A DNA stretch of 64,000 nucleotides, taken from positions 28,210,001 to 28,274,000 of the forward strand of contig OZ281496.1 in the NCBI GenBank assembly GCA_965637545.1, written 5' to 3'. The stretch comes from Phallusia mammillata. Taxonomy: Eukaryota. The notes beneath the pieces were generated by a model. It did not search any database. It saw only the letters and a program-made list of their open reading frames with translations, and had not been told where the DNA came from. Made by a program: the position numbers and the translations under genes. This document shows, in pieces, positions 310 through 26,575 of the stretch (within the stretch, counting starts at the first letter, position 1; the number at the start of each line of letters is the position of its first letter).

Positions 310-425
310 GTGATTGGACGGTTGAAGAGCGCCAATGCCACGTTTCAGGAGCAAGCGTTCTGATTGGTCGAAAGAAAAAGAAAAAAGGGAATCGTCACAC
401 CTTGAACGCGTGCGGCCGATCAGTC
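310..425 (+). promoter_or_regulatory. Pol II promoter of unit 1: three CCAAT boxes plus Inr
   Basis: ATTGG 313-317, CCAAT 332-336, ATTGG 363-367 and Inr-like TCAGTC 420-425, followed by a pyrimidine run and exon 1. Repeated at the head of every unit. Confidence 0.7.
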
Positions 426-541
426 TTTCTTTAGCAACTCGTGTTGAAGGTGGTTGTGTTGACGGGAGTCTGCTAGAAGATTGAAAAGATGCAGGTAACT
501 TGTAAATTTGCTTGTTTACTTGTTACCTATAATTCTACTTG

Positions 542-605
542 TTCGGTGTCTATGATGGTAGTAAACTTTGGTGCACACTGGTTTACTCCTGCACAGATAC
601 CGGAA
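542..605 (+). ncRNA. Intronic hairpin A (candidate pre-miRNA); copies at 2083, 3631, 5178, 8349 and 9911; damaged copy ~6921
   Basis: TTCGGTGTCT pairs with AGATACCGGAA, and AGTAAAC with GTTTACT. The loop contains GTGCAC. The 3' arm GGTTTACTYCTGCACAGATACCGGAA is conserved while the 5' arm varies. Confidence 0.55.
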
Positions 606-804
606 TCAAACTTACATAGTTGGTTAGGGCTTGCAGAAAATTTTTAAGAGCAAAGTTGTGTTGGATCATTTTGTTTCAGATTTAAGTAAGAAGAACAATA
701 TGATTTGGGAAGACATTGTCTGTGAAGAGGAATGATGATTTACGGAAACAGGCGAGTAAATGTGTTTGTAAATGTTATGAATATAATGTCAAAGTTTGTA
801 AGTC

Positions 805-854
805 CAGCATGGGCGGATAGTTTAAACGTGCACTTATTCTGTCTTCGCATGTCG
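805..854 (+). ncRNA. Intronic hairpin B in a GC-AG intron; copies at 2351, 3899, 5446, 7135, 8614 and 10180
   Basis: CAGCATG pairs with CATGT(C/T)G, and GGCGGATAG with TTATTCTGTC. ACGTGCACTTATTCTGTCTTC is present in all 7 units and, inverted, at 18105-18135. Confidence 0.55.
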
Positions 855-1110
855 AGATGCTAGATTGTTTTTAATAAACTAGTTAATATATCGCCTTAAA
901 TACGTGGTACTGCTTCTGCTTTGTTTTGCAGAAAAGGAACACTGATGTCGATTTGAGTTGCAACCTAACTGCGTAAAGGACAAAGAACAGATGCCTAAAG
1001 CTCCAAAAGGTATGTTATGTTGAATACGCTTTCAAATAGGCCTGCTTGTGCAAATTATGTAACATAATAATATGTAGGGCTTTATTTATAATCATTTCTA
1101 CCATATTGTA

Positions 1111-1183
1111 GCGAATATCTAACCCGGTGTTTATGCATGTTGTACTTCAGTTTTTTGCATGTCATGTGTTTTCGGCTATTCGT
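1111..1183 (+). ncRNA. Intronic hairpin C; copies at 2658, 4206, 5753, 7436, 8922 and 10333; truncated copy at 11115
   Basis: CGAATAGC/GCTATTCG closing stem (CGAATATC in units 1-4), upper ATGCATG/CATGTCAT stem, loop starting TTGYAC or TGGCAC. Confidence 0.5.
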
Positions 1184-1568
1184 TCCTCGCAATCGGTGGA
1201 AGTGAGAGTTTATTTTTTTGCCGCTAAAATTAAATTAATATCAAATACATTAATAGTTCTGTTGAATTATCGCATAAGATTTTGGTCGTAATGTTGACTC
1301 ATCCTGTCGTAGAATGTTGACATATGCTTTAGCACATAATAATGTAGCTTTAATTTTCCATAAGTTTCTGCCTCCTTGTTTTATTTCCTGCAGCATACGT
1401 AAATGCGATGCGACCGTATTCCATGACGAGGAGCTAACGTAAAGGAACATGGCCTTTGAATTTGAGGTAACTAATCTAGCCTTACTGTTGTTGTTGTTTT
1501 TTATTAAATTAAAGTCATAAAATATATGTAGCATACAGCCTGTTACATACCACAGCAAAACACTTTAC

Positions 1569-1635
1569 GTATAGTCCTATATGGGTAAATGAACCAACAA
1601 GTCCCGTGATTGTTCGTTTATACCGTTTCTATGAC
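1569..1635 (+). ncRNA. Intronic hairpin E; copies at 3114, 4662, 6209, 7887 and 9374; diverged copy ~10831
   Basis: GGTAAATGAAC pairs with GTTCGTTTATACC, and GTATAG with CTATGAC. Conserved position in intron 4. Confidence 0.4.
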
Positions 1636-1874
1636 ATTGTACATGTAATCTTTGATTTTTTGCCGATGGGGAATAAATGAATGCTACACTTGCGCTACTT
1701 CATTCTTGTTCGACGGCCTCGGTGAAGGTTGCTGGTGTATTTGGACTTCGTGGATTTCTAAGAAGTCTGACGGATGTTTCAACTTCCGAAGAAGAAGTAC
1801 ATACAAATATCAGGTACTCCTGTTTTGCACATTGTTTTTGTGATGCAGAAGTAAACTATTTTTTGCAGTTATGT

Positions 1875-1962
1875 AATTGGACGGTTGAAGAGCGCCAATG
1901 TGACGTTTCACGAGCAAGCGTTCTGATTGGTCGAACGCAAAAAGAAAACAAGGGGTCATTCT
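1875..1962 (+). promoter_or_regulatory. Unit 2 promoter, short allele (also units 3, 4 and 6)
   Basis: ATTGG-GCCAATGTGACGT-CTGATTGG cassette, then TCATTC at 1956-1961. About 30 bp between the proximal CCAAT box and the Inr are missing relative to unit 1. Confidence 0.6.
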
Positions 1963-4900
1963 TTCTTGAGCAGCTCGTGGTGAAGGTGGTTGTGTTGACG
2001 GGAGTCTGCTGGAAGATGGAAAAGATGCAGGTAGTTTACTTGTACATTTTCTTGTTTTACTTGTTACCTATAATTCTACTTGTTCTGTGTCTATGATAGT
2101 AGTAAACTTTGGTGCACACTGGTTTACTTCTGCACAGATACCGGAATATAGCTTACTAGTTGGTTAAGGCTTGCATAAGTTTTCAAGAACAAAGTTAAAG
2201 TTCTGTTGGATCATTTTGTTTCAGATTTAAGTAAGAAGAACAATATGATTTGGGAAGACATTGTCTGTCAAGAGGAATGATGATTTACGGAAAACAGGCG
2301 AGTAAATGTGTTTGTAAATGTTATGAATATAATGTCAAAGTTTGTAAGTCCAGCATGGGCGGATAGTTTGAACGTGCACTTATTCTGTCTTCGCATGTCG
2401 AGATGCTAGATTGTTTTTAATAAACTAGTTAATATATCGCCTTAAATACGTGGTACTGCTTCTGCTTTGTTTTGCACAAAAGGAACACTGATGTCGATTT
2501 GAGTTGCAACCTAACTGCGTAAAGGACAAAGAACAGATGGCCTAAAGCTCCAAAAGGTATGTTATGTTGAATACGCTTTCAAATAGGCCTGCTTGTGCAA
2601 ATTATGTAACATAACAATATGTAGGGCTTTATTTATAATCATTTCTACCATATTGTAGCGAATATCTAACCCGGTGTTTATGTATGTTGTACTTCAGTTT
2701 TTTGCATGTCATGTGTTTTCGGCTATTCGTTCCTCGCAATCGGTGGAAGTGAGAGTTTAATTTTTCGCCGCTAAAATTATATTAATATCAAATACATTAA
2801 TAGTTCTGTTGAATTATCGCATAAGATTTTGGTCTTAATGTGGACTTATCCTGTCGTAGAATGTTGACATATGCTTTAGCACATAATAATGTAGCTTTAA
2901 TTTTCCATAAGTTTCTGCCTCCTTGTTTTATTTCCCGCAGCATACGTAAATGCGATGCGACCGTATTCCATGACGAGGAGCTAACGTAAAGGAACATGGC
3001 CTTCCAATTTGAGGTAACTAATCTAGCCCTACTGTTTTTGTTTTTTTATTAAATCAAAGTCATAAAATTTATGTAGCATACAGCCTGTTACATACCACAG
3101 CAAAACACTTTACGTATAGTCCTATATGGGCAAATGAATCCACAAGTCCCGTGATTGTTTCTTTATACCGTTTCTATGACATTGTACATGTAATCTTTGA
3201 TTTTTTTTTGCAGGTAAAGGAAAGATGAATGCTACACTTGCGCTACTTCATTCTTGCTCGACATCCTGGGTGAAGGTTGGTGGTGTATTTTGACTTCGTG
3301 GATTTCTAAGAAGTCTTACGGATGCTTCAACTTCCGGAGAAGAAGTACATACAGACACCAGGTACTCCTGTTTTGTAAATTGTTTTTGTGATGCAGAAGT
3401 AAACTATTTTTTGCAGTTATGTAATTGGACGGTTGAAGAGCGCCAATGTGACGTTTCACGAGCAAGCGTTCTGATTGGTCGAACGCAAAAAGAAAAAAAG
3501 GGGTCATTTTTTCTTGAGCAACTCGTGTTGAAGGTGGTTGTGTTGATGGGAGTCTGCTAGAAGATGGAAAGGATGCAGGTTAATTACTTGTAAATGTGCT
3601 TTTTTTACTTGTTACATCTAAACGTACTTGTTCGGTGTCTATGTCAGTATTAAACCTGGATGCACAGTGGTTTACTCCTGCACAGATACCGGAATATAGC
3701 TTACTAGTTGGTTAAGGCTTGCATAAGTTTTCAAGAACAAAGTTAAAGTTCTGTTGGATCATTTTGTTTCAGATTTAAGTAAGAAGAACAATATGATTTG
3801 GGAAGACATTGTCTGTCAAGAGGAATGATGATTTACGGAAAACAGGCGAGTAAATGTGTTTGTAAATGTTATGAATATAATGTCAAAGTTTGTAAGTCCA
3901 GCATGGGCGGATAGTTTAAACGTGCACTTATTCTGTCTTCGCATGTCGAGATGCTAGATTGTTTTTAATAAACTAGTTAATATATCGCCTTAAATACGTG
4001 GTACTGCTTCCGCTTTGTTTTGCAGAAAAGGAACACTGATGTCGATTTGAGTTGCAACCTAACTGCGTAAAGGACAAAGAACAGATGGCCTAAAGCTCCA
4101 AAAGGTATGTTATGTTGAATACGCTTTCAAATAGGCCTGCTTGTGCAAATTATGTAACATAACAATATGTAGGGCTTTATTTATAATCATTTCTACCATA
4201 TTGTAGCGAATATCTAACCCGGTGTTTATGTATGTTGTACTTCAGTTTTTTGCATGTCATGTGTTTTCGGCTATTCGTTCCTCGCAATCGGTGGAAGTGA
4301 GAGTTTAATTTTTCGCCGCTAAAATTATATTAATATCAAATACATTAATAGTTCTGTTGAATTATCGCATAAGATTTTGGTCTTAATGTGGACTTATCCT
4401 GTCGTAGAATGTTGACATATGCTTTAGCACATAATAATGTAGCTTTAATTTTCCATAAGTTTCTGCCTCCTTGTTTTATTTCCCGCAGCATACGTAAATG
4501 CGATGCGACCGTATTCCATGACGAGGAGCTAACGTAAAGGAACATGGCCTTCCAATTTGAGGTAACTAATCTAGCCTTACTGTTTTTGTTTTTTTATTAA
4601 ATCAAAGTCATAAAATTTATGTAGCATACAGCCTGTTACATACCACAGCAAAACACTTTACGTATAGTCCTATATGGGCAAATGAATCCACAAGTCCCGT
4701 GATTGTTTGTTTATACCGTTTCTATGACATTGTACATGTAATCTTTGATTTTTTTTGCAGGTAAAGGAAAGATGAATGCTACACTTGCGCTACTTCATTC
4801 TTGCTCGACATCCTGGGTGAAGGTTGGTGGTGTATTTTGACTTCGTGGATTTCTAAGAAGTCTTACGGATGCTTCAACTTCCGGAGAAGAAGTACATACA

Positions 4901-6707
4901 GACACCAGGTACTCCTGTTTTGTAAATTGTTTTTGTGATGCAGAAGTAAACTATTTTTTGCAGTTATGTAATTGGACGGTTGAAGAGCGCCAATGTGACG
5001 TTTCACGAGCAAGCGTTCTGATTGGTCGAACGCAAAAAGAAAAAAAGGGGTCATTTTTTCTTGAGCAACTCGTGTTGAAGGTGGTTGTGTTGATGGGAGT
5101 CTGCTAGAAGATGGAAAGGATGCAGGTTAATTACTTGTAAATGTGCTTTTTTTACTTGTTACATCTAAACGTACTTGTTCGGTGTCTATGTCAGTATTAA
5201 ACCTGGATGCACAGTGGTTTACTCCTGCACAGATACCGGAATATAGCTTACTAGTTGGTTAAGGCTTGCATAAGTTTTCAAGAACAAAGTTAAAGTTCTG
5301 TTGGATCATTTTGTTTCAGATTTAAGTAAGAAGAACAATATGATTTGGGAAGACATTGTCTGTCAAGAGGAATGATGATTTACGGAAAACAGGCGAGTAA
5401 ATGTGTTTGTAAATGTTATGAATATAATGTCAAAGTTTGTAAGTCCAGCATGGGCGGATAGTTTAAACGTGCACTTATTCTGTCTTCGCATGTCGAGATG
5501 CTAGATTGTTTTTAATAAACTAGTTAATATATCGCCTTAAATACGTGGTACTGCTTCCGCTTTGTTTTGCAGAAAAGGAACACTGATGTCGATTTGAGTT
5601 GCAACCTAACTGCGTAAAGGACAAAGAACAGATGGCCTAAAGCTCCAAAAGGTATGTTATGTTGAATACGCTTTCAAATAGGCCTGCTTGTGCAAATTAT
5701 GTAACATAACAATATGTAGGGCTTTATTTATAATCATTTCTACCATATTGTAGCGAATATCTAACCCGGTGTTTATGTATGTTGTACTTCAGTTTTTTGC
5801 ATGTCATGTGTTTTCGGCTATTCGTTCCTCGCAATCGGTGGAAGTGAGAGTTTAATTTTTCGCCGCTAAAATTATATTAATATCAAATACATTAATAGTT
5901 CTGTTGAATTATCGCATAAGATTTTGGTCTTAATGTGGACTTATCCTGTCGTAGAATGTTGACATATGCTTTAGCACATAATAATGTAGCTTTAATTTTC
6001 CATAAGTTTCTGCCTCCTTGTTTTATTTCCCGCAGCATACGTAAATGCGATGCGACCGTATTCCATGACGAGGAGCTAACGTAAAGGAACATGGCCTTCC
6101 AATTTGAGGTAACTAATCTAGCCTTACTGTTTTTGTTTTTTTATTAAATCAAAGTCATAAAATTTATGTAGCATACAGCCTGTTACATACCACAGCAAAA
6201 CACTTTACGTATAGTCCTATATGGGCAAATGAATCCACAAGTCCCGTGATTGTTTGTTTATACCGTTTCTATGACATTGTACATGCAATCTTAGATTTTT
6301 TGCAGATAAGGAATAAATGAATGCTACACTTGCGCTACTTCATTCTTGTTCGACGGCCTGGGTGAAGGTTGGTGTTGTATTTGGACTTTGTGAATTTCTA
6401 AGAAGTTTGACGGATGTTTCAACCTTCAGACTAGAAGTACTTACAGATTTTAGGTACTACTGTTTGTTAAATTGTGGGTTTTTTGTGGTGCAGAAGTAAA
6501 CTAGGGTACACACAGTAGTAAATTTCTTATTGATTTCGTAAGAGTTATTTTACGCAAAAGCATCATACTAATTAGGTCATAAATTACGTCTCATTTTCGC
6601 ATTTTATTTTGGGTCAGTTCAGCGCTTTTATTTGTGCCTCTAGAAAATTAATTAAGGTTTTCGTAGCATTTCAGGCCACGTCCGGTTAATTGCCCCCAAT
6701 CAGCTAC

Positions 6708-6825
6708 GTGATTGGACGATTAAAGAGCGCCATTGTGACGTTTCAGGAGCAAGCGTTCTGATTGGTTGAAAGAAAAAAGAAAAAAAGGAATTGTCACACC
6801 TTGGACGCGTGCGGTCGGTCATTCT
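6708..6825 (+). promoter_or_regulatory. Unit 5 promoter, long allele, with duplicated upstream flank
   Basis: GTGATTGGACG...GCCATTGTGACGT...CTGATTGG...TCATTC (6819-6824). The middle box reads CCATT. 6520-6710 is homologous to 130-310. Confidence 0.6.
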
Positions 6826-9680
6826 TTCTTTAGCAGCTCGTGGTGAAGGTGGCTGTGTGGACGGGAGTCTGCTAGAAGATGGAAAAGTTGCAGGTAATTT
6901 GCTTTTTGTACATTTACTCGTTGTCTTTGTAGGTAGTAAACTTTGGTACTTCTGCATAGTTAACGGAATATAACGTACATCGTTGCTACGGTTTGCATAA
7001 AATTACAAGAACAAAATACTGATGTTCATTTTGTTTCAGGAAAAGACATTTCCACAAGAGGAATGATGATTTACGGAAAACAGGCGAGTTAATATGTTTG
7101 TAAACGTAAACAATCTATGTCCAAACATTTAAGTCCACTTGGGCGGATAGTTTAAACGTGCACTTATTCTGTCTTCCCATGTTGAGATGCTATTTTTGTA
7201 TATTAAACTAGATAGTATATCGCCTTAAATGCCTGGTACTGCCTCCGCTTCGTTTTGCAGAAAAGAAACACGGATGCAGATTTGAGTATAGCAACCTAAC
7301 ACAAACTGCATAAAGGACAAATAACAGATGACCTCTAAAAGGTATGCTGTGCTGAACACGCTTTCAAATAGTGCAAATAGTGTAACATAACAATATATGC
7401 AGGGCTTAAATTGAAACCACTTCTACCATATTGTAACGAATAGCTGGCCTGACTTTTATGCATGTGGCACTTCACTTTTTTGCATGTCATGTGTCTGCGG
7501 CTATTCGTTCCTCGCAATCGGTGGAAGTGAGAGTTCTATTTTTCGCCGCTAAAATTAAATTAATATCAAATACATTAATAGTTCTGTTGAATTATCGCAT
7601 AAGATTTTTGGCGTAATGTGGACTTATCCTGTTTTCGCATGTTGACATATACTTAAGCACATAATAATGTAGCTTTAATTTTCCATAAGTTTCTGCCTCC
7701 TTGTTTTATTTCCCGCAGCATACGTAAATGCGATGCGACCGTATTCCATGACAAGGAGCTAACGTAAAGGAACATGGCCTTCGAATTTGAGGTAACTAAT
7801 CTAGCCTTACTGTTTTTTTTATTAAATCAAAGTCATAAAATATATGTAGCATACAGCCTGTTACATACCGCAGCAAAACACTTTACGTATAGTCCCATAT
7901 GGGCAAATGAATCAACAAGTCCCGTGATTGTTTGTTTATACCGTTTCTATGACATTGTACATGTAATCTTTGATTTTTTGCAGATGAGGAATAAATTAAT
8001 GCTACACTTGCGCTACTTCATTCTTGCTCGACGGCCTGAGTGGAGGTTGGTGGTGTATATGGACTTTGTGAATTTTTGAAAGGTATGACGGATGTTTCAA
8101 CTTTTGTGATGCAGAAATAAACTATTTTTTGCAGTTATGTAATTGGACGGTTGAAGAGCGCCAATGTGGCGTTTCACGAGCAAGCGTTCTGATTGGTCGA
8201 AGGCAAAAAGAAAAAAAGGGGCCATTTTTTCTTGAGCAACTCGTGTTGAAGGTGGTTGTGTTGACGGGAGTCTGCTAGAAGATGGAAAAGATGCAGGTAG
8301 TTTACTTGTACATTTTATTGTTTTACTTGTTACCTATAATTCTACTTGTTCTGTGTCTATGATGGTAGTAAACTTTGGTGCACACTGGTTTACTCCTGCA
8401 CAGATACCGGAATATAACTTACATAGTTGGTTAAGGATTGCATAAAAAAAAACCAAGAGCAAAGTTCTGTTGGATCATATTGTTTCAGATTTAAGTAAGA
8501 AGAACAATATGATTGTGAAAGTCATTGTCTGTGAAGAGGAATGATGATTTACGGAAACAGGCGAGTAAAGGTGTTTGTAAATGTTATCAATCTAATGTTA
8601 AAGTTTGTAAATCCAGCATGGGCGGATAGTTTAAACGTGCACTTATTCTGTCTTCGCATGTTGTGATGCTAGATTGTTTTTAATAAACTAGTTAATATAA
8701 CGCCTTAAATACCTGGTACTGCTTTCACTTTGTTTTTCAGAAAAGAACACTCATGCAGATTTGAGTTGCAACCCAACTGCTTAAAGGACAAAGAACAGAT
8801 TGCTTAAAGCTATAAAAGGTAGGTTATGTTGAATAAGCTTCAAATAGTGCGTGATTGCGCAAATCGTGTAACATAACAATATATGTAGGGCTTCATTTAA
8901 AACCACTTCTACCATATTGTAACGAATAGCTAACCCGGTGTTTATGCATGTGGCACTTTTGTTTTTTTGCATGTCATGTGTTTTCGGCTATTCGTTCCTC
9001 GCAATCGGTAGAAGTGAGAGTTCTATTTTTCGCCGCTAAAATTATATTAATATCAAATACATTAAAAGTTCTGTTGAATTATCGCATAAGATGTTGGTCG
9101 TAATGTGGACTTATCCTGTCTTCGCATGTTGACATATACTTTAGCACATAATAATGTAGCTTTAATTTTCCAAAAGTTTCTGCCTCCTTGTTTTATTTCC
9201 TGCAGCATACGTATGTGGGATCCGATCGTTTTCCGTAACGAGGAGCTAACGTAAAGGAACATGGCCTTCGAATTTGAGGTAACTAATCTAGCCTTACTGT
9301 TTTTTTTATTAAATTAAAGTCACAAAATATATGTAGCATACAGCCTGTTACATATCACAGCAAAACACTTTACGTATAGTCCTATATGGGCAAATGAATC
9401 CACAAGTCCCGTGATTGTTTGTTTATACCGTTTCTATGACATTGTACATGTAATCTTTGATTTTTTTGCAGGTAAAGGAAAGATGAATGCTACACTTGCG
9501 CTACTTCATTCTTGCTCGACGGCCTGAGTGAAGGTTGGTGGTGTATTTTGACTTCGTGGATTTCTAAGAAGTCTGACGGATGTTTCAACTTTCGGACTAG
9601 AAGTACTTACAGATATCAGGTACTCCTGTTTTGTAAGTTGTTTTTGTGATGCAGAAATAAACTATTTTTTGCAGTTCTGT

Positions 9681-9800
9681 AATTGGACGGTTGAAGAGCG
9701 CCAATGTGACGTTTCAGGAGCAAGCGTTCTGATTGGTCGAAAGCAAAAAGAAAAAAAAAGGAATCGTCACACCTTGGACGCGTGCGGCCGGTCATTCTTT
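9681..9800 (+). promoter_or_regulatory. Unit 7 promoter, long allele
   Basis: Same CCAAT triplet, TGACGT and GGTCATTCTTTCT initiator as unit 1. Confidence 0.6.
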
Positions 9801-10510
9801 CTTTGACAACTCGTGGTGAAGGTGGCTGTGTCGACGGGAGTCTGCTAGAAGATGGAAAAGATGCAGGTAGTTTGCTTGTACATTTTCTTGTTTTACTTTA
9901 AATCTACTTGTTCGGTGTCTATGATAGTAGTGAACTTTGGGTGCACACTGGTTTACTTCTGCACAGATACCGGAATATAACTTACATAGCTGGTTAAGGC
10001 TTGCATAAATTTTCAAGAGCGAAGTTCTGTTGGATCATTTTGTTACAGATTTAAGTAAGAAGAACAATATGATTTGGGAAGGCATTGTCTGTCAAGAGGA
10101 ATGATGATTTACGGAAAACAGGCCAGTAAATGTGTTTGTAAATGTTATGTTATCAATCTAATGTTAAAGTTTTTAAGTCCAGCATGGGCGGATAGTTTGA
10201 ACGTGCACTTATTCTGTCTTCGCATGTTGAGCTCTAAAAGGTTTGTTATGTTACATTAGGTATTAAATAGTGCCTAGTGTAACATAACAATATATGTAGG
10301 GCTTTAATTGAAACCACTTCTACCATATTGTAGCGAATAGCTATCCCGGTGTTTATGCATGTGGCACTTCAGTTTTTTGTATGTCATGTGTTTTCGGCTA
10401 TTCGTTCCTCCCAATCGGTGGAAGTGAGAGTTCTATTTTTCGCCGCTAAACTTAACATTAATATTAAATGCATTAACAGTTCTGTTGAATTATCCCATAC
10501 GATTTTGGTT

Positions 10511-10563
10511 TAATATGGGAAGGCAGTGTAACGTGCACTTACCCTGCCTTCGCTTATTGACAT
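10511..10563 (+). ncRNA. Hairpin D, the only intact copy in array 1 (paralog of B)
   Basis: GAAGGCAG-T-GTAA / TTAC-C-CTGCCTTC stem with a CGTGCAC loop. Units 1-6 lack about 17 nt of this 5' arm. Confidence 0.5.
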
Positions 10564-11201: not shown

Positions 11202-11869
11202 TCAACAAGGGCAGAAGTGTTATGCTCGGTTAATTTTCTAAAAAGAATAGCCTGGTTGTTAACAACATAAATTAATAACGTCATTAGGTCTCGTTACGTA
11301 AACATAGCTTGTTAATAACCTTGTTGATGTCTTTTTACAGGTTATAGACAAGTACATAATTAACTGTTTGTCATTTAATTCAGTTGTTGTTTAATGCTAG
11401 CATGTGAAAGTTGTTTAATGTGCCATTATCCTGCCTTTACATGTTGTGATATTTTAATGTGATAGAAAGTATGTTATATGCAATTTTTTGTTACTGCTTT
11501 TTCTTAATTTACAGAGAAAACTCCCAAGCAATTAAGACACATTTCTTACCATGAAGACAAGTCAAGGAAAACAACAAAACTCCCCCATGAAAGATAAGTT
11601 ATTGTTTACGGTATCACTAACTTGTGTATTTTTTGCATGAAAATTTGATTGTAGCATGTTCTGCTTTGCATTGGCGCATGTTTAGTTGTCTTTTCTGGTG
11701 CTTGTTGCGCATTTCTGCATCCTTAACATTGAAGAACGGTATTTTTGTTGTTGCAGATGTTAGTTGCTATGTATGATCGGAAACGGCTGAAACGGATAGT
11801 TGAAAACTTGAGAGAGTTGGAACACAGAGAGCTGGACGAATCACCACAAAAGATTGAACTAATTCTCAA

Positions 11870-18104: not shown

Positions 18105-18156
18105 GTCAACATGCGAAGACAGAATAAGTGCACGTCAAACTGCATTCCCATCTTAG
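18105..18156 (-). ncRNA. Hairpin D/B homolog in array 2
   Basis: Minus strand ACGTGCACTTATTCTGTCTTCGCATGTTGACAT, followed by the same intron 3' end as array 1 intron 3. Confidence 0.5.
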
Positions 18157-19827
18157 ACCAAACACTAAATGTAATAAAACAATTAGGATTATATCACAAG
18201 AACTAATGACGGCATTTGCGCCAGACAAAAATTTACGAATTATGACATTTTAAAAATACTTTGTTTCGCAAATTAGCCAAGCAAACACTTTTACTAATGC
18301 TGACCCACTAATAGTTACCCAAAACACATAACACGTAAAAAAGTAAAATGCAACATGCTCAAGCACAGGGTTAATCAGCATGGTAGAAGCGTTTGTTCGC
18401 TGTTTTTTAAACAGCATTTCAAATTTAGTATTAGGCGGATTTAATTTATCTTTACTCTGTGAATCTTAGGCCCTACTTACATTGCTGACTTTCGTATCAG
18501 AGCCGTATCAGGTGGTGTTGTGACTCTAATCTGAAACAACCAACAAAAGTTCAATAGTTATCCCTCAGAGTTAGGCAAAATTAATCTATTTTAACCTTAT
18601 ATGGCACTTAATACACAAGCGGTTGGTTTATATGTTGTTATATTAGCGGCGCGGAATACATTAAACACTTATTAAACACTCACTAAGTACACAAGCGGTA
18701 CGTTATATATGTTTTATAAATAAGTAATGTATATTTTAAGTATTGTACACGTATGCGTTTTATTATATTGTAGTGTTGTGCCTACTGTGTTTGTTTAGTT
18801 AGGTTTTCTCGTTTTATATGCTACATCTGTGTAACGTTTGCATTAATAAATATTACTTACGCTCTTACGTACTATTATATTATTGTTAGTTTATGCAACT
18901 GGAACGCGCTATTTAACTTACATTGCTGCCTTGAAAGTGCTTTCATCCATCTGGGGACGTAGGTTTATATCCGAAATCTGAAAAAACAACAGTTGTTCAG
19001 CGTGTACAAATCAGGCAGCTTATTCAGGACATTATTTGTTTTTAAAAATGTATTGAAACATATTCAATATAATTATTAACCCTCCCATAGACATAGTCCC
19101 TACATACATCACGCATTTTTTTACGGTCAAGTAAAATATAACTCAGAAACTACATGGCAATACAAATAAGGTCACAACAGCATTACTTACATTCAGTATC
19201 CAGTCCTTCAGTACATCGATTCCATATGAAAACTCCTGGGATGTTTACATCAGGAAAGGATTGTTGATCCTACACTAAAAACAACAGGTTCTCAGTTCCG
19301 CGAATAAATGTGTACAATTCAGAGTAGGTTTGTATCAGCTACAAACTAATGGTTGTAAATTATGCATAAATAAATTGTACATACACCCATTATATAAGCA
19401 ACCAAGCCAATAACATACTTACAACTTTGGCGTTATCGCTTCATGGTCTCGGTAACACTTCCCTTCGGCATCCGATATTTTCCTGCAATACCAAAGCAGA
19501 AGCAGTACCACGAATTCACAGACAATTTAAACTGCATTAAAATATGTTTTTGGCAAGTCAACATGTGGAGACGGCATAGTGCACTTTACACAGTCCCCAC
19601 ATGCTGGTCCTATTATATATTATAAACTACACACTATATATGTTCAACCCTTTTAAAATCTACTTGCCTATTATTTTAAGTTCCATGTTGCAAAACCTCG
19701 CATGCCACTTCAGTCGCATAAAAGGACTTTCTTTCCATTGCTTTATTGGATAACCTGAAACAAAATAAACTAGCAGTATAAACAAGTATTTGAAAAGTAA
19801 CCTAGTTATATTAACTCGCAAACAAAA

Positions 19828-19893: not shown

Positions 19894-20261
19894 ATAGCAC
19901 CTAATGTTAATGTAATACGTATATTGTGAAATAAAATGTTAAGTGTAGGAGATGTAGTTTGCTACCATGATTACAAGTTACCTTAAACGTAAGAAGGCCT
20001 TGTTCCCCTCAATTCCAGTTTCTTCTCGTCACAGAAACGACCATCGCTTTTCTACCGAAACTGCAAAAAAAAACAGGGACGCAGAAACGTATAGACAATA
20101 AAGTTACGTTATCATGTGCTAAAATATGTCAACATGCGAAGACAGGTATAAGAACTATTGTGTGGTTACGTCACAAACAACGATGACGTCATAAAACTTT
20201 TAACGCTGAACGTCCTTATATTAATCAAAAATTAGCAGCGCACTTCTACCGATGCCGACAA

Positions 20262-20343: not shown

Positions 20344-23285
20344 ATCAACATGCTAGAAGTGTTTTTAAATTAAACTTTACGTGAGTTAATTGTGTCATAC
20401 ATTGTACGTTTTGCGGCGAATGTCATTGTTTAGCAACTGTTAGTCAACTTGCATTGCTTCATTGGAAGGTCTTTTATCCATCTCTGAAAGTATTTGGGCT
20501 TTACATCAAAAATCTGAAACAAATCAACAATATAAAGTATTTTAACATCGGGGAAGGATAGCAAAAGCTTTCGCAGCCTTTTTACAACTTAATTTGTTTT
20601 TAAAAATGTAATTAAGCATATTCAATTTATCAATGTTCTTTCCAATAAACCCCTCAACTAAGTTACGTTATCTAAAGTATTATGAACGTATTGTAGCGTT
20701 GTGCATACTGTGTGTTTGTTTGTTATTTTTAATTGCTTTTTTATTATTAAGACGGCACATCTGTTTAACGTTTGCATTATTAAATATTACTTACGCTCTT
20801 ACGTATTATCATATCATAGTTAGTTTATTTAACTTACATATTGCTGCCTTTGAAGGGCTTTTATCCATCTCGGACCGTAGGTTTATATCCAAAATCTGAA
20901 AAAAATCAGCAGTTGTTTAGAGTGTACAAATAAGGTCAAAGTAAGGCATTGAAAGCAAAATGTTTCGCAGCTTAGTTAGAACATTATTTGTTTCTAAAAA
21001 TTTATTGAAACATATTTAATATAATTATTATTAACCCTCAAACTACATTTTCCATAAACATAGGCACCTTACATACATCACGCATTTTTACGGCAAAGTG
21101 AAATGTGCATAGATTCGCAAATTACATTGCAATACCAATCAGGTCATAACAGCACTACTTACATTCAGTATCCAGTCATTTAATACATCGCTTCAACAAG
21201 AAAATTCCCGGGATGTTTACATCAGGAATGGATTGTTGATCCTACACTAAAAACAACAGGATATCAGCTCAGCGAATGAATGTGCACAATTCAGAGTAAG
21301 GTTTGTATCCACTATAAATTAATGGTTGTAAATTATAAAGAAATAAATGGTACATACACCCATTATATAAGCACGCAAGTCACTAACAAACCTTTCAACT
21401 TTTCCGTTATGACTTTATGGTCTCCGAAATACTTTCGTTCCGATTCCGATATTTTCCTGTAAACCCAAAGCAGAAGCAGTACCACGAATTCAGATACAAA
21501 TTAAACAACAGCAAAATATGTTTTTGGCAAGTAAACATGTGGAGACGGCATAGTGCACTTTACACAGTCCCCACATGCTGTCCCTATTATATTAGAAACT
21601 ACACACTTAAATATGTTCAACTCTTATTATGTGCACTTGCCTATTATTTTAAGTTTCATGTTACGAGACCTCGCTTGCCACTTCAGTCGCATAAAAGGAC
21701 TTTCTTTCCATTGCTTTATTGGATAACCTGAAACAAAATGAACTAGCAGTATAAACAAGTATTTAAAAAGTAAACTAAATATATTAACTCGCAAACTATA
21801 TTTCGCTATCAGCGCAAGTAAACCAATGTGCACCCAACTTTACTTCTCCACAGAAACCGAACAAGTTTACTTCGAGTAATTTAACCCAAAATTATGTACA
21901 TTAGCATGGAGAATATCTAATAGCACCTAATGTTAATGTAATACATTTAAAGTATGATAAACGTAAACGTAGTTTGGCATTGTATATATCTGCATCTTGT
22001 TTTTTTTTTTATTAAGACGGCACATCTGTGTAACGTTTGCATTATTAAATATTACTTACGCTCTTACGTATTATCATATCATAGTTAGTTTATTTAACTT
22101 ACATATTGCTGCTTTGGAAGGGCTATTATCCATCTCGGACCGTAGGTTTATATCCAAAATCTGTAAAAAATCAGCAGTTGTTTAGAGTGTACAAATAAGG
22201 CCTAAAGTAAGGCTGAAATAGCAAAATGTTTCGCAGCTTAGTTAGAACAATATTTGTTTCTAAAAATTTATTGAAACATATTTAATATAATTATTATTAA
22301 CCCTCAAACTACATTTTCCATAAACATAGGCACCTTACATATATCACGCATTTTTACGGAAAAGTGAAATGTGCATAGATTCACAAATTACATTGCAATA
22401 CCAATAATGTCACAACAGCATTACTTACATTCAGTATCCAGTCATTCAATACATCGCTTCAACAAGAAAACTCCCGGGATGTTTACATCCGGAATGGATT
22501 GTTGATCCTACACTAAAAACAACAGGTTCTCAGTTCGGCGAATAATGTGCACAATTCAGAGTAAGGTTTGTATCTCCTGTAGCGGTCATGATATTAATGT
22601 GCACAAAGACTGCCGTTTACGTTTCACTACTATAAACTAATGGTTGTTAATTATGCAGAAATAAATGGTACATACACCCATTATATAAGCACCCAAGTCA
22701 CTAACAAACTTACAACTTTGACGTTATCGCTTCATGGTCTCGGTAACACTTCCCTTCGGCTTCCGATATTTTCCTGCAATACCAAAGCAGAAGCAGTACC
22801 ACGAATGTACAAAAAATTAAACAACATTAAACTCCGTTTTTAACAAGTCAACATGTGGAGACGGCATAGTGCACTTTACACAGTCCCCACATGCTGTCCC
22901 TACTATATATTATAAACTACACACTACATATGTTCAACTCTTATAAAATCTACTTGCCTATGTATTTTAAGTTCCGTGTTGCAAGACCTCGCATGCCACC
23001 TCAGTCGCATAAAAGGACTTCCTTTCCATTACTTCTTTGGGTAACCTGAAACAAAATAAACCCGCTGCAGAAACAATTATTTGAAAAGTAACCTGGTTAT
23101 ATTAACTCGCAAACAATATTTCGGTATCACTGCAAGAAGTAAACCAGTAAACCATCATTCTATAAGAAAACTCCTGGGATGTTTACATCAGAAATGGATT
23201 GTTGACCCTACACTAAAAAGGTTCTCAGTTCAGCGAATGAATGTGTACAATTCAGAGTAAGGTTTGTATCTACTATAAACTAATT

Positions 23286-23349
23286 GTTGTCAATCATGCA
23301 GAAATAAATGGTACGTACACCCATTATATAAGCACCCAAGTCACTAACA
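23286..23349 (-). ncRNA. Hairpin F (8 copies, one per module)
   Basis: GTTAGT/ATTGAC, GTGC/GCAT and AATGG/CCATT stems with a GTGTA(T/C)GTA loop. Starts just after the exon-y donor. Confidence 0.4.
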
Positions 23350-23490
23350 AACCTTTCAGCTTTTCCGTTACTGACTTTATGGTCTCCGTAACACTTTCGT
23401 TCCGATTCAGATATTTTCCTGTAAACCGAAGCAGAAGCAATACCACAAATATACAAAAAAATAAACAACATTAAACTCCGTTTGTAGCAA

Positions 23491-23540
23491 GTCAACATGT
23501 GGAGACGGCATAGTGCACTTTACACAGTCCCCACATGCTG
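23491..23540 (-). ncRNA. Hairpin B-prime (8 near-invariant copies), candidate pre-miRNA
   Basis: Minus strand CAGCATGTGGGGAC-TGTGTA-AAGTGCAC-TATGCC-GTCTCCACATGTTG, extended by a TAGTAGG/CTTGCTA basal stem. Lies in a GC-AG intron. Confidence 0.6.
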
Positions 23541-26444
23541 TCCCTACTATATATTATAAACTACACACTACATATGTTCAACTCTTATAAAATCTACTTG
23601 CCTATGTATTTTAAGTTCCGTGTTGCAAGACCTCGCATGCCACCTCAGTCGCATAAAAGGACTTCCTTTCCATTACTTCTTTGGGTAACCTGAAACAAAA
23701 TAAACCCGCTGCAGAAACAATTATTTGAAAAGTAACCTGGTTATATTAACTCGCAAACAATATTTCGGTATCACTGCAAGAAGTAAACCAGTAAACCATC
23801 ATTCTATAAGAAAACTCCTGGGATGTTTACATCAGAAATGGATTGTTGACCCTACACTAAAAAGGTTCTCAGTTCAGCGAATGAATGTGTACAATTCAGA
23901 GTAAGGTTTGTATCTACTATAAACTAATTGTTGTCAATCATGCAGAAATAAATGGTACGTACACCCATTATATAAGCACCCAAGTCACTAACAAACCTTT
24001 CAGCTTTTCCGTTACTGACTTTATGGTCTCCGTAACACTTTCGTTCCGATTCCGATATTTTCCTGTAAACCGAAGCAGAAGCAATACCACAAATATACAA
24101 AAAAATAAACAACATTAAACTCCGTTTTTAACAAGTCAACATGTGGAGACGGCATAGTGCACTTTACACAGTCCCCACATGCTGTCCCTACTATATATTA
24201 TAAACTACACACTATATATGTTCAACCCTTATAAAATCTACTTGCCTATGTATTTTAAGTTCCGTGTTGCAAGACCTCGCATGCCACCTCAGTCGCATAA
24301 AAGGACTTCCTTTCCATTACTTCTTTGGGTAACCTGAAACAAAATAAACCCGCTGCAGAAACAAGTATTTGAAAAGTAACCTAATTACATTAACTCGCAA
24401 ACAAAATTTCGGTATCACTGCAAGAAGTAAACCAGTAAACCATCGATTCCATTAGAAAACTCCTGGGATGTTTACATCAGGAATGCATTGTTGATGATAC
24501 ACTAAAAAGGTTCTCAGTTCAGCGAATGAATGTGCACAATTCAGAGTAAGGTTTGTATCTACTATAAACTAATTGTTGTCAATCATGCAGAAATAAATGG
24601 TACATACACCCATTATATAAGCAACCAAGTCACTAACAAACTTACAACTTTGGCGTTATCGCTTCATGGTCTCGGTAATACTTCCCTTCGGCTTCCGATA
24701 TTTTCCTGCAGTACCAAAGCAGAAGCAGTACCACGAATTCACAGACAATTTAAACTGCATTAAAACATGTTTTTAACAAGTCAACATGTGGAGACGGCAT
24801 AGTGCACTTTACACAGTCCCCACATGCTGGTGCTATTATATATTATAAACTACACACTTATATATGTTCAACCCTTATAAAATCCACTTGCCTATTATTT
24901 TAAGTTCCATGTTGCGAGACCTCGCATGCCACTTCAGTCGCATAAAAGGACTTTCTTTCCATTGCTTATTTGGATAACCTGGAACAAAATAAACTAGCAG
25001 TAGAAACATGTATTTGAAAATAAAAACAAATATATTTACTTACAAACTATAATGCGGTATCACTGCAAGAAGTAAACCAGTAAACCATCGATTCCATAAG
25101 AAAACTCCTGGGATGTTTACATCAGGAATGCATTGTTGATCCTACACTAAAAAGGTTCTCAGTTCAGCGAATGAATGTGCACAATTCAGAGTAAGGTTTG
25201 TATCTACTATAAACTAATTGTTGTCAATTATGCAGAAATAAATGGTACATACACCCATTATATAAGCACCCAAGTCACTAACAAACTTACAACTTTTCCG
25301 TTGTGACTTTATGGTCTCCGTGACACTTTCGTTCCGATTCCGATATTTTCCTGTAAACCCAAAGCAGAAGCAGTACCACGAATTCACAAAAAATTAAACA
25401 ACATCAAATTCCGTTTTCAACAAGTCAACATGTGGAGACGGCATAGTGCACTTTACACAGTCCCCGCATGCTGGTCCCACTATACATAATAAGTTAGACG
25501 CTTATATATGTTCAACTCTTATAGTATGTACTTGCCTATTATTTTAAGCTCCGTGTTGCAAGATCTCGCATGCCACTTCAGTTGCATAAAAGGACTTTCA
25601 TTCCATTACTTCTTTGGATAAACTGAAACAAAATAAACTCGCTGCAGAAACAAGTATTTGAAAGTAACCTAATTACATTAACTTGCAAACAATATTCCGG
25701 TATCACTGCAAGAAGTAAACCAGTAAACCATCGATTCCATAAGAAAACTCCTGGGATGTTTACATCAGGAATGCATTGTTGATCCTACACTAAAAACAAC
25801 AGGTTCTCAGTCCAGCGAATGAATGTGCACAATTCAGAGTAAAGTTTGTATCTACTATAAACTAATTGTTGTTAATTATGCAGAAATAAATGGTACATAC
25901 ACCCATTATATAAGCACCCAAGTCACTAACAAACCTTTGAACTTTTCCGTTATGACTCTATGGTCTCCGTAACACTTTCGTTCCGATTCCGATAATTTCC
26001 TGTAATGCAGAAGCAGTACCACGAATATACAAAAAATAAACAACATTAAACTCCGTTTGTAGCAAGTCAACATGTGGAGACGGCATAGTGCACTTTACAC
26101 AGTCCCCACATGCTGACACTACTATATATTATAAACTACACACTTATTAATGTTCTACTAAGCTACTTGCCTATTATTTTAAGTTCCGTGTTGCGAGACC
26201 TCGCATGGCACTTCAGTCGCATAAAAGGATAACCTGAAACAATAAACTAGCAGTAGAAGCGTGTATTTGAAAATTAACCTAATTATATTTACTCGTAAAC
26301 AGTGTGCATCCAAGTTTACTTCTACACAGACACCAAACAAGTTCGCTTAAAAACGAGATTACCTGCATCTTTTCCATTTGTAAGTCTTCTTTATGGGCAG
26401 ACTCCCGTCCACACAGCCACCTTCAACACGAGCTGTCAAAGAAA

Positions 26445-26575
26445 GAATGATCGACCCCACGAGTCCAAGGTATGACGATTTCCTTTTTTCTTTTTGCTTT
26501 CGACCAATCAGAACGCTTGCTCCTAACACGTCACATAGGCGCTCTTTTAACTGACCAATGACAGGTGTTATTGCA
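26445..26575 (-). promoter_or_regulatory. Array 2 promoter, same cassette as array 1
   Basis: Minus strand reads ATTGG (26555-26559), GAGCGCCTATGTGACGT, GCAAGCGTTCTGATTGGTCGAAAG (CCAAT 26504-26508) and Inr TCATTC (26445-26450). Confidence 0.75.

Follow-up and report, generated by a model that had tools for sequence, protein, structure and literature searches.

Tandem intron-hosted hairpins in the Phallusia mammillata genome: candidate microRNA-like precursors of a large, lineage-specific family

A 64,000-nucleotide (nt) stretch of the genome of the tunicate Phallusia mammillata (assembly GCA_965637545.1, contig OZ281496.1, positions 28,210,001 to 28,274,000 of the forward strand; hereafter, the window) carries a tandem array, array 2, in which a short hairpin that we call B-prime recurs eight times almost without change, in units whose remaining sequence differs freely. 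What keeps the hairpin constant, and what might it be for? Coordinates are those of the window, and C3, C5, and C70 denote chromosome pieces of the assembly. The evidence places selection on the hairpin as an RNA, transcribed from the minus strand and housed in small introns of a spliced, noncoding transcript. As to its product, we put at about an even chance that B-prime and its relatives form a large, lineage-specific family of intron-hosted, microRNA-like small-RNA precursors of the size of a precursor microRNA (pre-miRNA).

A nearly invariant hairpin in diverged units

A 42-nt core of B-prime occurs eight times in the plus-strand letters of the window (seven exact occurrences and one with a single mismatch, against a chance expectation of 0). 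Each occurrence lies in a minus-strand hairpin that is also recovered by a covariance model, R1, which was built from 20 copies found by BLAST-type searches of the assembly:

19562, 21536, 22852, 23496, 24140, 24785, 25429, and 26071, plus strand: starts of the 42-nt core (sequence matches)
23491 to 23542, minus strand: B-prime hairpin in focus, 52 nt (R1, 71.4 bits)
19557 to 19608, minus strand: B-prime hairpin copy (core match and R1, 72.7 bits)
21531 to 21582, minus strand: B-prime hairpin copy, variant at 21533 (core match and R1)
22847 to 22898, minus strand: B-prime hairpin copy (core match and R1)
24135 to 24186, minus strand: B-prime hairpin copy (core match and R1)
24780 to 24831, minus strand: B-prime hairpin copy, covered by unspliced RNA contigs (core match and R1)
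25424 to 25475, minus strand: B-prime hairpin copy, variant at 25466 (core match and R1)
26066 to 26117, minus strand: B-prime hairpin copy within an RNA-supported intron (core match, R1, and RNA contig)

Most copies are spaced as tandem units of ~644 bp. A first-pass annotation of this DNA had described eight copies with a nearly invariant 50-nt core, and alignment bears this out: the only differences are those at 21533 and 25466. Across the eight-unit alignment, 2 of 50 columns vary in this core, compared with 56 of 122 in the flanks within the same intron (Fisher test versus core, 1e-8) and 33 of 126 in two neighboring exons (6e-4). Because flank identity among the eight copies, which ranges from 0.66 to 0.97 (3 to 34% divergence), falls so low, the core must have been kept constant across diverged units; the hairpin is under purifying selection.

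Selection at the level of RNA structure

Read from the minus strand, B-prime folds at -34.3 kcal/mol (z -5.5), versus -19.5 kcal/mol (z -1.6) for the plus strand, with two plus-strand A·C mismatches becoming G·U pairs. The 52-nt hairpin consists of a 20-bp stem with one 1x1 internal loop (a 14-bp helix, the internal loop, and 5 bp more) closed by an 8-nt loop that holds GUGCAC. The better copies have fold z scores of -3.9 to -6.2, and the best carry an additional 7-bp basal helix beneath a small internal loop. G·U pairs outnumber A·C mismatches by 73 to 6 in a hand-made alignment and by 137 cells to 15 in the family at large; choosing the strand by score favors G·U in such counts, and the strand of array 2 is fixed independently by splice joints.

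The first-pass annotation had argued for selection on RNA structure from the basal helix (TAGTAG/TTGCTA and its variants), in which it saw a G-C/G-U/A-U compensatory series. The letters that it quoted for each copy are correct, but the series dissolves once all eight copies are counted: the pair is G-C in two, G-U in three, A-U in one, and A·C in two (Fisher p = 1.0), and because all four combinations occur, the two sides vary independently. About five of the eight copies form the basal helix in their minimum-energy fold, two of them in a shifted register, and 61% of its cells are paired in a 23-sequence alignment of the eight copies and 15 paralogs. Covariation in this set does not rise above that of shuffles (0.172 versus 0.167 for the whole structure; 163 of 500 shuffles), and RNAalifold on a MAFFT alignment recovers only 6 pairs. 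With no covariation above shuffles, and with flanks that pair like shuffled ones family-wide, the basal stem was rejected as a selected helix.

Evidence for structure comes instead from the wider family. R1 finds at least 150 copies, distributed over C3 (25.99-30.85 Mb, in many arrays), C5 (24.9-27.3 Mb, at about one copy per 100 kb), and C70; the matches include eight at C3:27779996-27786034 and others at 26723624 and 26725085. Among 88 sense matches (73 distinct), standard pairs fill 82.2% of cells (shuffled, 78.9 ± 0.4%), 13 of 20 pairs have changed on both sides (shuffled, 7.1 ± 1.5), and 64 cells are changed on both sides (shuffled, 17.4 ± 6.1); none of 500 shuffles reaches any of these values, in a test that overstates significance because the sequences are related copies whose alignment was fitted to the model. 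When the 3′ partners are slid, pairing drops to 32-54%. One pair is cleanly compensatory (G-C in 54 and A-U in 16, with zero intermediates), and another is found as A-U in 31, G-C in 19, and G-U in 16. Given the strand-asymmetric fold, the G·U excess, minus-strand splicing (below), and family-wide covariation, we conclude that selection acts on the RNA; the earlier claim thus stands on this evidence and not on the basal pair series offered for it.

A spliced noncoding host with GC-AG introns

Transcription was assessed from the contigs of three small runs that behave as RNA (X1, X2, and X5; long RNA), compared over positions 20401-26400. Contig joints read CT..AC on the plus strand, corresponding to GT..AG introns of a minus-strand transcript, and minus-strand GT/GC..AG splicing is seen in the RNA contigs. 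The relevant features are as follows (a slash marks the exon-intron boundary):

25683 to 26400, minus strand: part of the spliced host transcript, exons 26400-26361, 26231-26171, 25999-25935, and 25789-25683 (contig X5 record 23)
26000 to 26170, minus strand: 171-nt GC-AG intron, AG/GCAAGU ... CAG/G (spliced contig X5 record 23)
23419 to 23601, minus strand: predicted 183-nt GC-AG intron around the 23491 hairpin (homology with 26000-26170; donor AGGCAAGTA, 59 nt upstream)
26504 to 26522, minus strand: promoter-like block with a CCAAT box, present once, upstream of array 2 (in array 1, every unit has one copy of this block)

The joined host exons contain stops in all three frames. The junction at 26000-26170 is canonical only when read as GC-AG, and the hairpin that it encloses (26066-26117) is preceded by 53 nt of intron and followed by 66 nt, such that neither end is a splice site, as at least one would be in a mirtron. 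In other contigs, exon and hairpin are continuous, without splicing, at a depth similar to that of the spliced form. Contig ends inside the hairpin were considered as processing sites and rejected: the unitig break at model position 41/42 is a branch of the assembly graph, since it coincides with the single difference from the paralog C3:28623736, and the depth of 30.8 fits the summed copies.

The GC donor belongs to a module that recurs throughout the family. Of 88 copies, 67 have the motif NGG/GC.AGU at 35-80 nt before the hairpin (median, 60) and none has GT at that place, and a pyrimidine tract with CAG follows downstream (median, 75 nt); the GC-donor/acceptor pattern is seen on both chromosomes. 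RNA demonstrates use of the GC donor in one copy, and homology predicts it for the remainder. A CCAAT-box-rich block is present in seven copies in array 1 (349-9736, plus strand) and just once by array 2, which fits a single transcription unit for the eight hairpins.

Some contigs depart from the unit order of the assembly. Two RNA contigs of run X2 step backwards within array 2 (24330>23994 and 24976>20836), which most simply reflects near-identical units or differences in unit number and may alternatively reflect repeated exons or circular RNA. In the DNA-like run X3, one contig links 23771 to 26297 (2525 bp skipped, with 13 other letters between), and in X1 another links 23140 to 26300; array 2 probably varies in unit number among individuals or haplotypes.

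Candidate microRNA-like precursors and rival explanations

What, then, is the product? With at least 16 paired positions between arms of ~22 nt and a loop of at least 8 nt (here, a 20-bp stem and an 8-nt loop), B-prime has the proportions of a compact pre-miRNA. The host is noncoding, its exons are poorly conserved, each small intron holds one strongly constrained element, and the units are tandemly amplified; this is the pattern of microRNA and small nucleolar RNA (snoRNA) host genes, and it points to the hairpin as the product. Its short stem and lack of a conserved lower stem match the size of a cropped pre-miRNA rather than that of the primary transcript (pri-miRNA). The precursor of ~46-50 nt that the first-pass annotation had envisaged is indeed short, at ~52 nt, although longer than a mir-451-type precursor.

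Under the microRNA-like reading, a noncoding transcript would start at the CCAAT-box promoter near 26.5 kb, cross array 2 on the minus strand, and be spliced, with each unit supplying short, poorly conserved exons and a GC-AG intron of ~170-185 nt with one central 52-nt hairpin. The selected product would be this hairpin and not the exons, i.e., a precursor with arms of roughly 22 nt and an 8-nt loop that could be diced into regulators of target RNAs. Constraint falls on the 5′ arm in the B-prime subfamily and on the loop and 3′ arm in the B subfamily (the hairpins of array 1). Its release may be tied to the small conserved intron, through splicing, debranching, and trimming of both tails; alternatively, it may involve assisted, inefficient cropping by Drosha. 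Because the helix is only pre-miRNA-long and has no conserved lower stem, intron-linked or assisted release seems likelier than standard measuring by Microprocessor. A more specific proposal, which we regard as doubtful, is that the hairpins are double-tailed mirtrons released without Microprocessor, or else stable hairpins of ~52 nt, with the GUGCAC loop as the working surface for protein binding or loop-loop kissing.

Several observations, in addition to the limits of the shuffle test given above, weigh against a microRNA-like precursor. The family has no conserved lower stem of about one helical turn (~33-35 bp in total), as is typical of microRNA genes: across 80 copies, the 20-nt flanks form 7.9 pairs, versus 8.2 in shuffled flanks, and in-register pairing beyond the helix is 0.33-0.51, versus 0.457 expected from composition. 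Stems have a median of 20 bp in the family and span 18-26 bp in the eight B-prime copies, leaving the Microprocessor-type basal stem of the first-pass annotation unsupported. By the same measure, the let-7, mir-124, and mir-7 genes of this genome have stems of 31-43 bp at six of seven loci (the measure failed at one let-7 copy), such that family stems are 10-15 bp shorter than those of known microRNA genes. Conservation among the 73 distinct copies is highest in the loop (GUGCAC, at least 0.97), followed by the 3′ arm (~0.88) and the 5′ arm (~0.78), the reverse of the usual microRNA profile, in which the arms exceed the loop. In addition, hardly any variation is seen in two mutually pairing CAUG tracts of the stem, suggestive of a sequence readout beyond pairing. 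Finally, Rfam returned only noise for the array, the hairpin alone, the B hairpin of array 1, and eight paralogous loci (best match, let-7 at 16 bits, E 0.45).

A rather unlikely but substantial alternative, our main rival reading, is that the RNA acts intact and undiced, either as a stable intron-derived hairpin or as a cis element (through protein binding or GUGCAC loop-loop contacts), perhaps controlling splicing or retention of a weak GC-AG intron. Such a role would account for the loop being the most conserved part and a 6-nt palindrome in 68 of 73 distinct copies, for the invariance of both CAUG tracts, for the absence of a pri-miRNA lower stem, for a GC donor kept in 67 of 88 copies with no GT alternative, and for unspliced contigs over the hairpin intron that are as deep as spliced ones. 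A splicing tuner, however, has no obvious beneficiary, since the host exons are poorly conserved and noncoding. A GCAUG/Rbfox-type platform was rejected as a family feature, as 23 of 73 distinct hairpins lack GCAUG and 68 of 73 lack UGCAUG (present in just 5). Nor is pairing of the 5′ splice site with the stretch right after the hairpin, attractive in the copies at 19557 and 21531, general in the family (-4.8 versus -3.8 kcal/mol; 14% of copies at p ≤ 0.05). A canonical intronic microRNA cluster, dependent on Drosha/DGCR8 and with its lower stem formed by the TAGTAG/TTGCTA helix, strikes us as improbable. The best copies reach 26 bp with the 7-bp basal helix included, folds of 30 bp or more are obtained for about 22% of the family, and tandem intronic microRNA arrays such as C19MC and the Sfmbt2 cluster are well known; against this, the basal helix forms in only about five of eight copies, does not covary, and is not kept in the family, and the stems of known microRNA genes in the same genome are 31-43 bp long.

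That the array has no RNA function at all, being a satellite-like repeat or DNA palindrome made uniform by recent amplification or gene conversion, is very improbable. Units are in tandem, the intron flanks of four units are 93-97% identical, and array copy number differs among DNA data sets (the 23771>26297 joint of X3), all as such an origin would have it. Uniformity is nonetheless limited to the 50-nt hairpin, with same-intron flanks differing by up to 34%, G·U is far above A·C on the transcribed strand, double compensatory changes occur family-wide, and every copy is flanked by conserved splice signals. We consider a repeat devoid of function to be largely excluded. Least probable of all, and barely credible to us, is the miR-451-like route raised by the first-pass annotation, in which a short precursor is loaded straight into a slicing Argonaute and the mature RNA crosses the loop. 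In favor of this route are a hairpin shorter than is usual for pre-miRNAs, a conserved loop (as would be the case were the loop part of the product), and, in the B-prime subfamily, conservation that spans the 5′ arm and loop. Yet the hairpin, 52 nt long with 20 bp in its stem and 8 nt in its loop, exceeds mir-451 (~42 nt, 17-18 bp, and a 4-nt loop), its stem contains G·U pairs and conserved mismatches, and the route also needs the Drosha lower stem that is missing here. Moreover, constraint is on the loop and 3′ arm family-wide, the opposite of mir-451, and Rfam gave zero matches to the hairpin alone at E values up to 10, mir-451 included.

Relation to known systems

Other searches for relatives were likewise negative. 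No Rfam match near threshold was obtained for box C/D or H/ACA snoRNAs, and the element consists of one hairpin whose mismatches are all 1x1. Literature searches returned nothing relevant for the strings of both arms and nothing on this family among Phallusia or Ciona microRNA clusters. A likeness of the loop and 3′ arm to the seeds of miR-92 or miR-17 has no model support and was not used.

Several known systems resemble the B-prime locus in part:

(i) The primate C19MC and the rodent C2MC (in an Sfmbt2 intron) are lineage-specific clusters of tens to hundreds of copies, built of tandem units with short noncoding exons and one hairpin per intron. Arrays 1 and 2, with their units of exon and hairpin-bearing intron in a family of at least 150 copies, are much alike. 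The hairpins of C19MC and C2MC, however, are full-length Drosha substrates with sequenced products, whereas those of Phallusia have stems of ~20 bp, no conserved lower stem, an invariant loop, and putative products.

(ii) Mirtrons and tailed mirtrons are pre-miRNA-sized hairpins in short introns that can bypass Drosha via splicing and trimming. The small conserved intron of array 2 (171-183 nt) is similar in kind, but at least one hairpin end is a splice site in mirtrons, whereas both ends are tailed here (medians, ~60 nt upstream and ~75 nt downstream). We know of no described case of a double-tailed mirtron.

(iii) mir-451 shares the short precursor and the conserved loop. It differs in that stem and loop are larger here, constraint is on the loop and 3′ arm family-wide, and there is no sequence or covariance-model match.

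(iv) The snoRNA host genes (of the GAS5/SNHG type, and the SNORD115/116 arrays) combine a spliced noncoding host with one conserved element per intron and tandem units. Common to both are poorly conserved exons and a single element in each intron, set at a constant distance from the 3′ splice site; the element in Phallusia is a simple hairpin without recognizable C/D or H/ACA boxes or an Rfam snoRNA match.

(v) Zebrafish miR-430 and Xenopus miR-427 likewise form tandem arrays of very high copy number, and B-prime has AAAGUGC adjoining its loop. This heptamer is in the loop here and not at the 5′ end of an arm, most members read AACGUGC, and no homology is shown.

Should small RNAs arise from these hairpins, no microRNA-like gene family described in a tunicate would come close to this one in size. 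It would be on the scale of C19MC or miR-430, extending across ~5 Mb on one chromosome and 2.4 Mb on a second. With so short a stem, a loop that does not vary, and a conserved GC-AG intron for each hairpin, the family poses the question of how such hairpins are released.

Array 1, further family members, and other features of the window

The window contains a second array of related hairpins (B) and three more diverged members:

803 to 10231, plus strand: array 1, seven B hairpins of 54 nt each, starting at 803, 2349, 3897, 5444, 7133, 8612, and 10178, in units of ~1547 bp
18105 to 18157, minus strand: diverged B-like hairpin at the distal end of array 2 (R1, 55 bits)
10509 to 10561, plus strand: further diverged family member (R1, 49.4 bits)
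11396 to 11448, plus strand: weaker diverged family member (R1, 38.8 bits)

Arrays 1 and 2 align over a shared module that runs from an acceptor and a short exon through the GC donor, hairpin, and polypyrimidine tract to a second acceptor, with the exon sequence itself diverged between them, and they face each other across a satellite at 11.9-17.6 kb. Array 1 also has a hairpin A (542-605, plus strand; -28 kcal/mol, z -2.7) with GUGCAC in its loop, which may be a more distant relative in the same superfamily; its counterpart in array 2 is partly exonic. Relics at 7579-7668 and 9066-9155 (plus strand) and 20106-20195 (minus strand) have kept the 3′ arm (CTTATCCTGTCTTCGCATGTTGAC-like) and lost the 5′ arm and do not form a hairpin.

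On C5, between 24.9 and 27.3 Mb, ~21 identical-scoring members lie on the minus strand ~100 kb apart, each with a weaker opposite-strand match ~6 kb away. This spacing and the paired weaker matches indicate a macro-repeat of ~100 kb that carries the module. Coding potential near a C5 copy was considered and rejected, as only short open reading frames are present.

A second conserved block (23271-23352, minus strand) occupies the next intron of each array 2 unit, with copies near 19339, 21311, 22628, 23915, 24560, 25205, and 25853; it contains TATATAA and is 0.89-0.98 identical among units. It was rejected as a second hairpin, having no fold (z 0.1) and being found only in array 2 and at C3:28625380. 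Lastly, a 31-nt stretch at 22578-22608 has very high depth in all runs (~2400 in X3 and 14-78 in the RNA runs), with many loose ends on both sides, and probably belongs to a dispersed, high-copy repeat that is transcribed as well.

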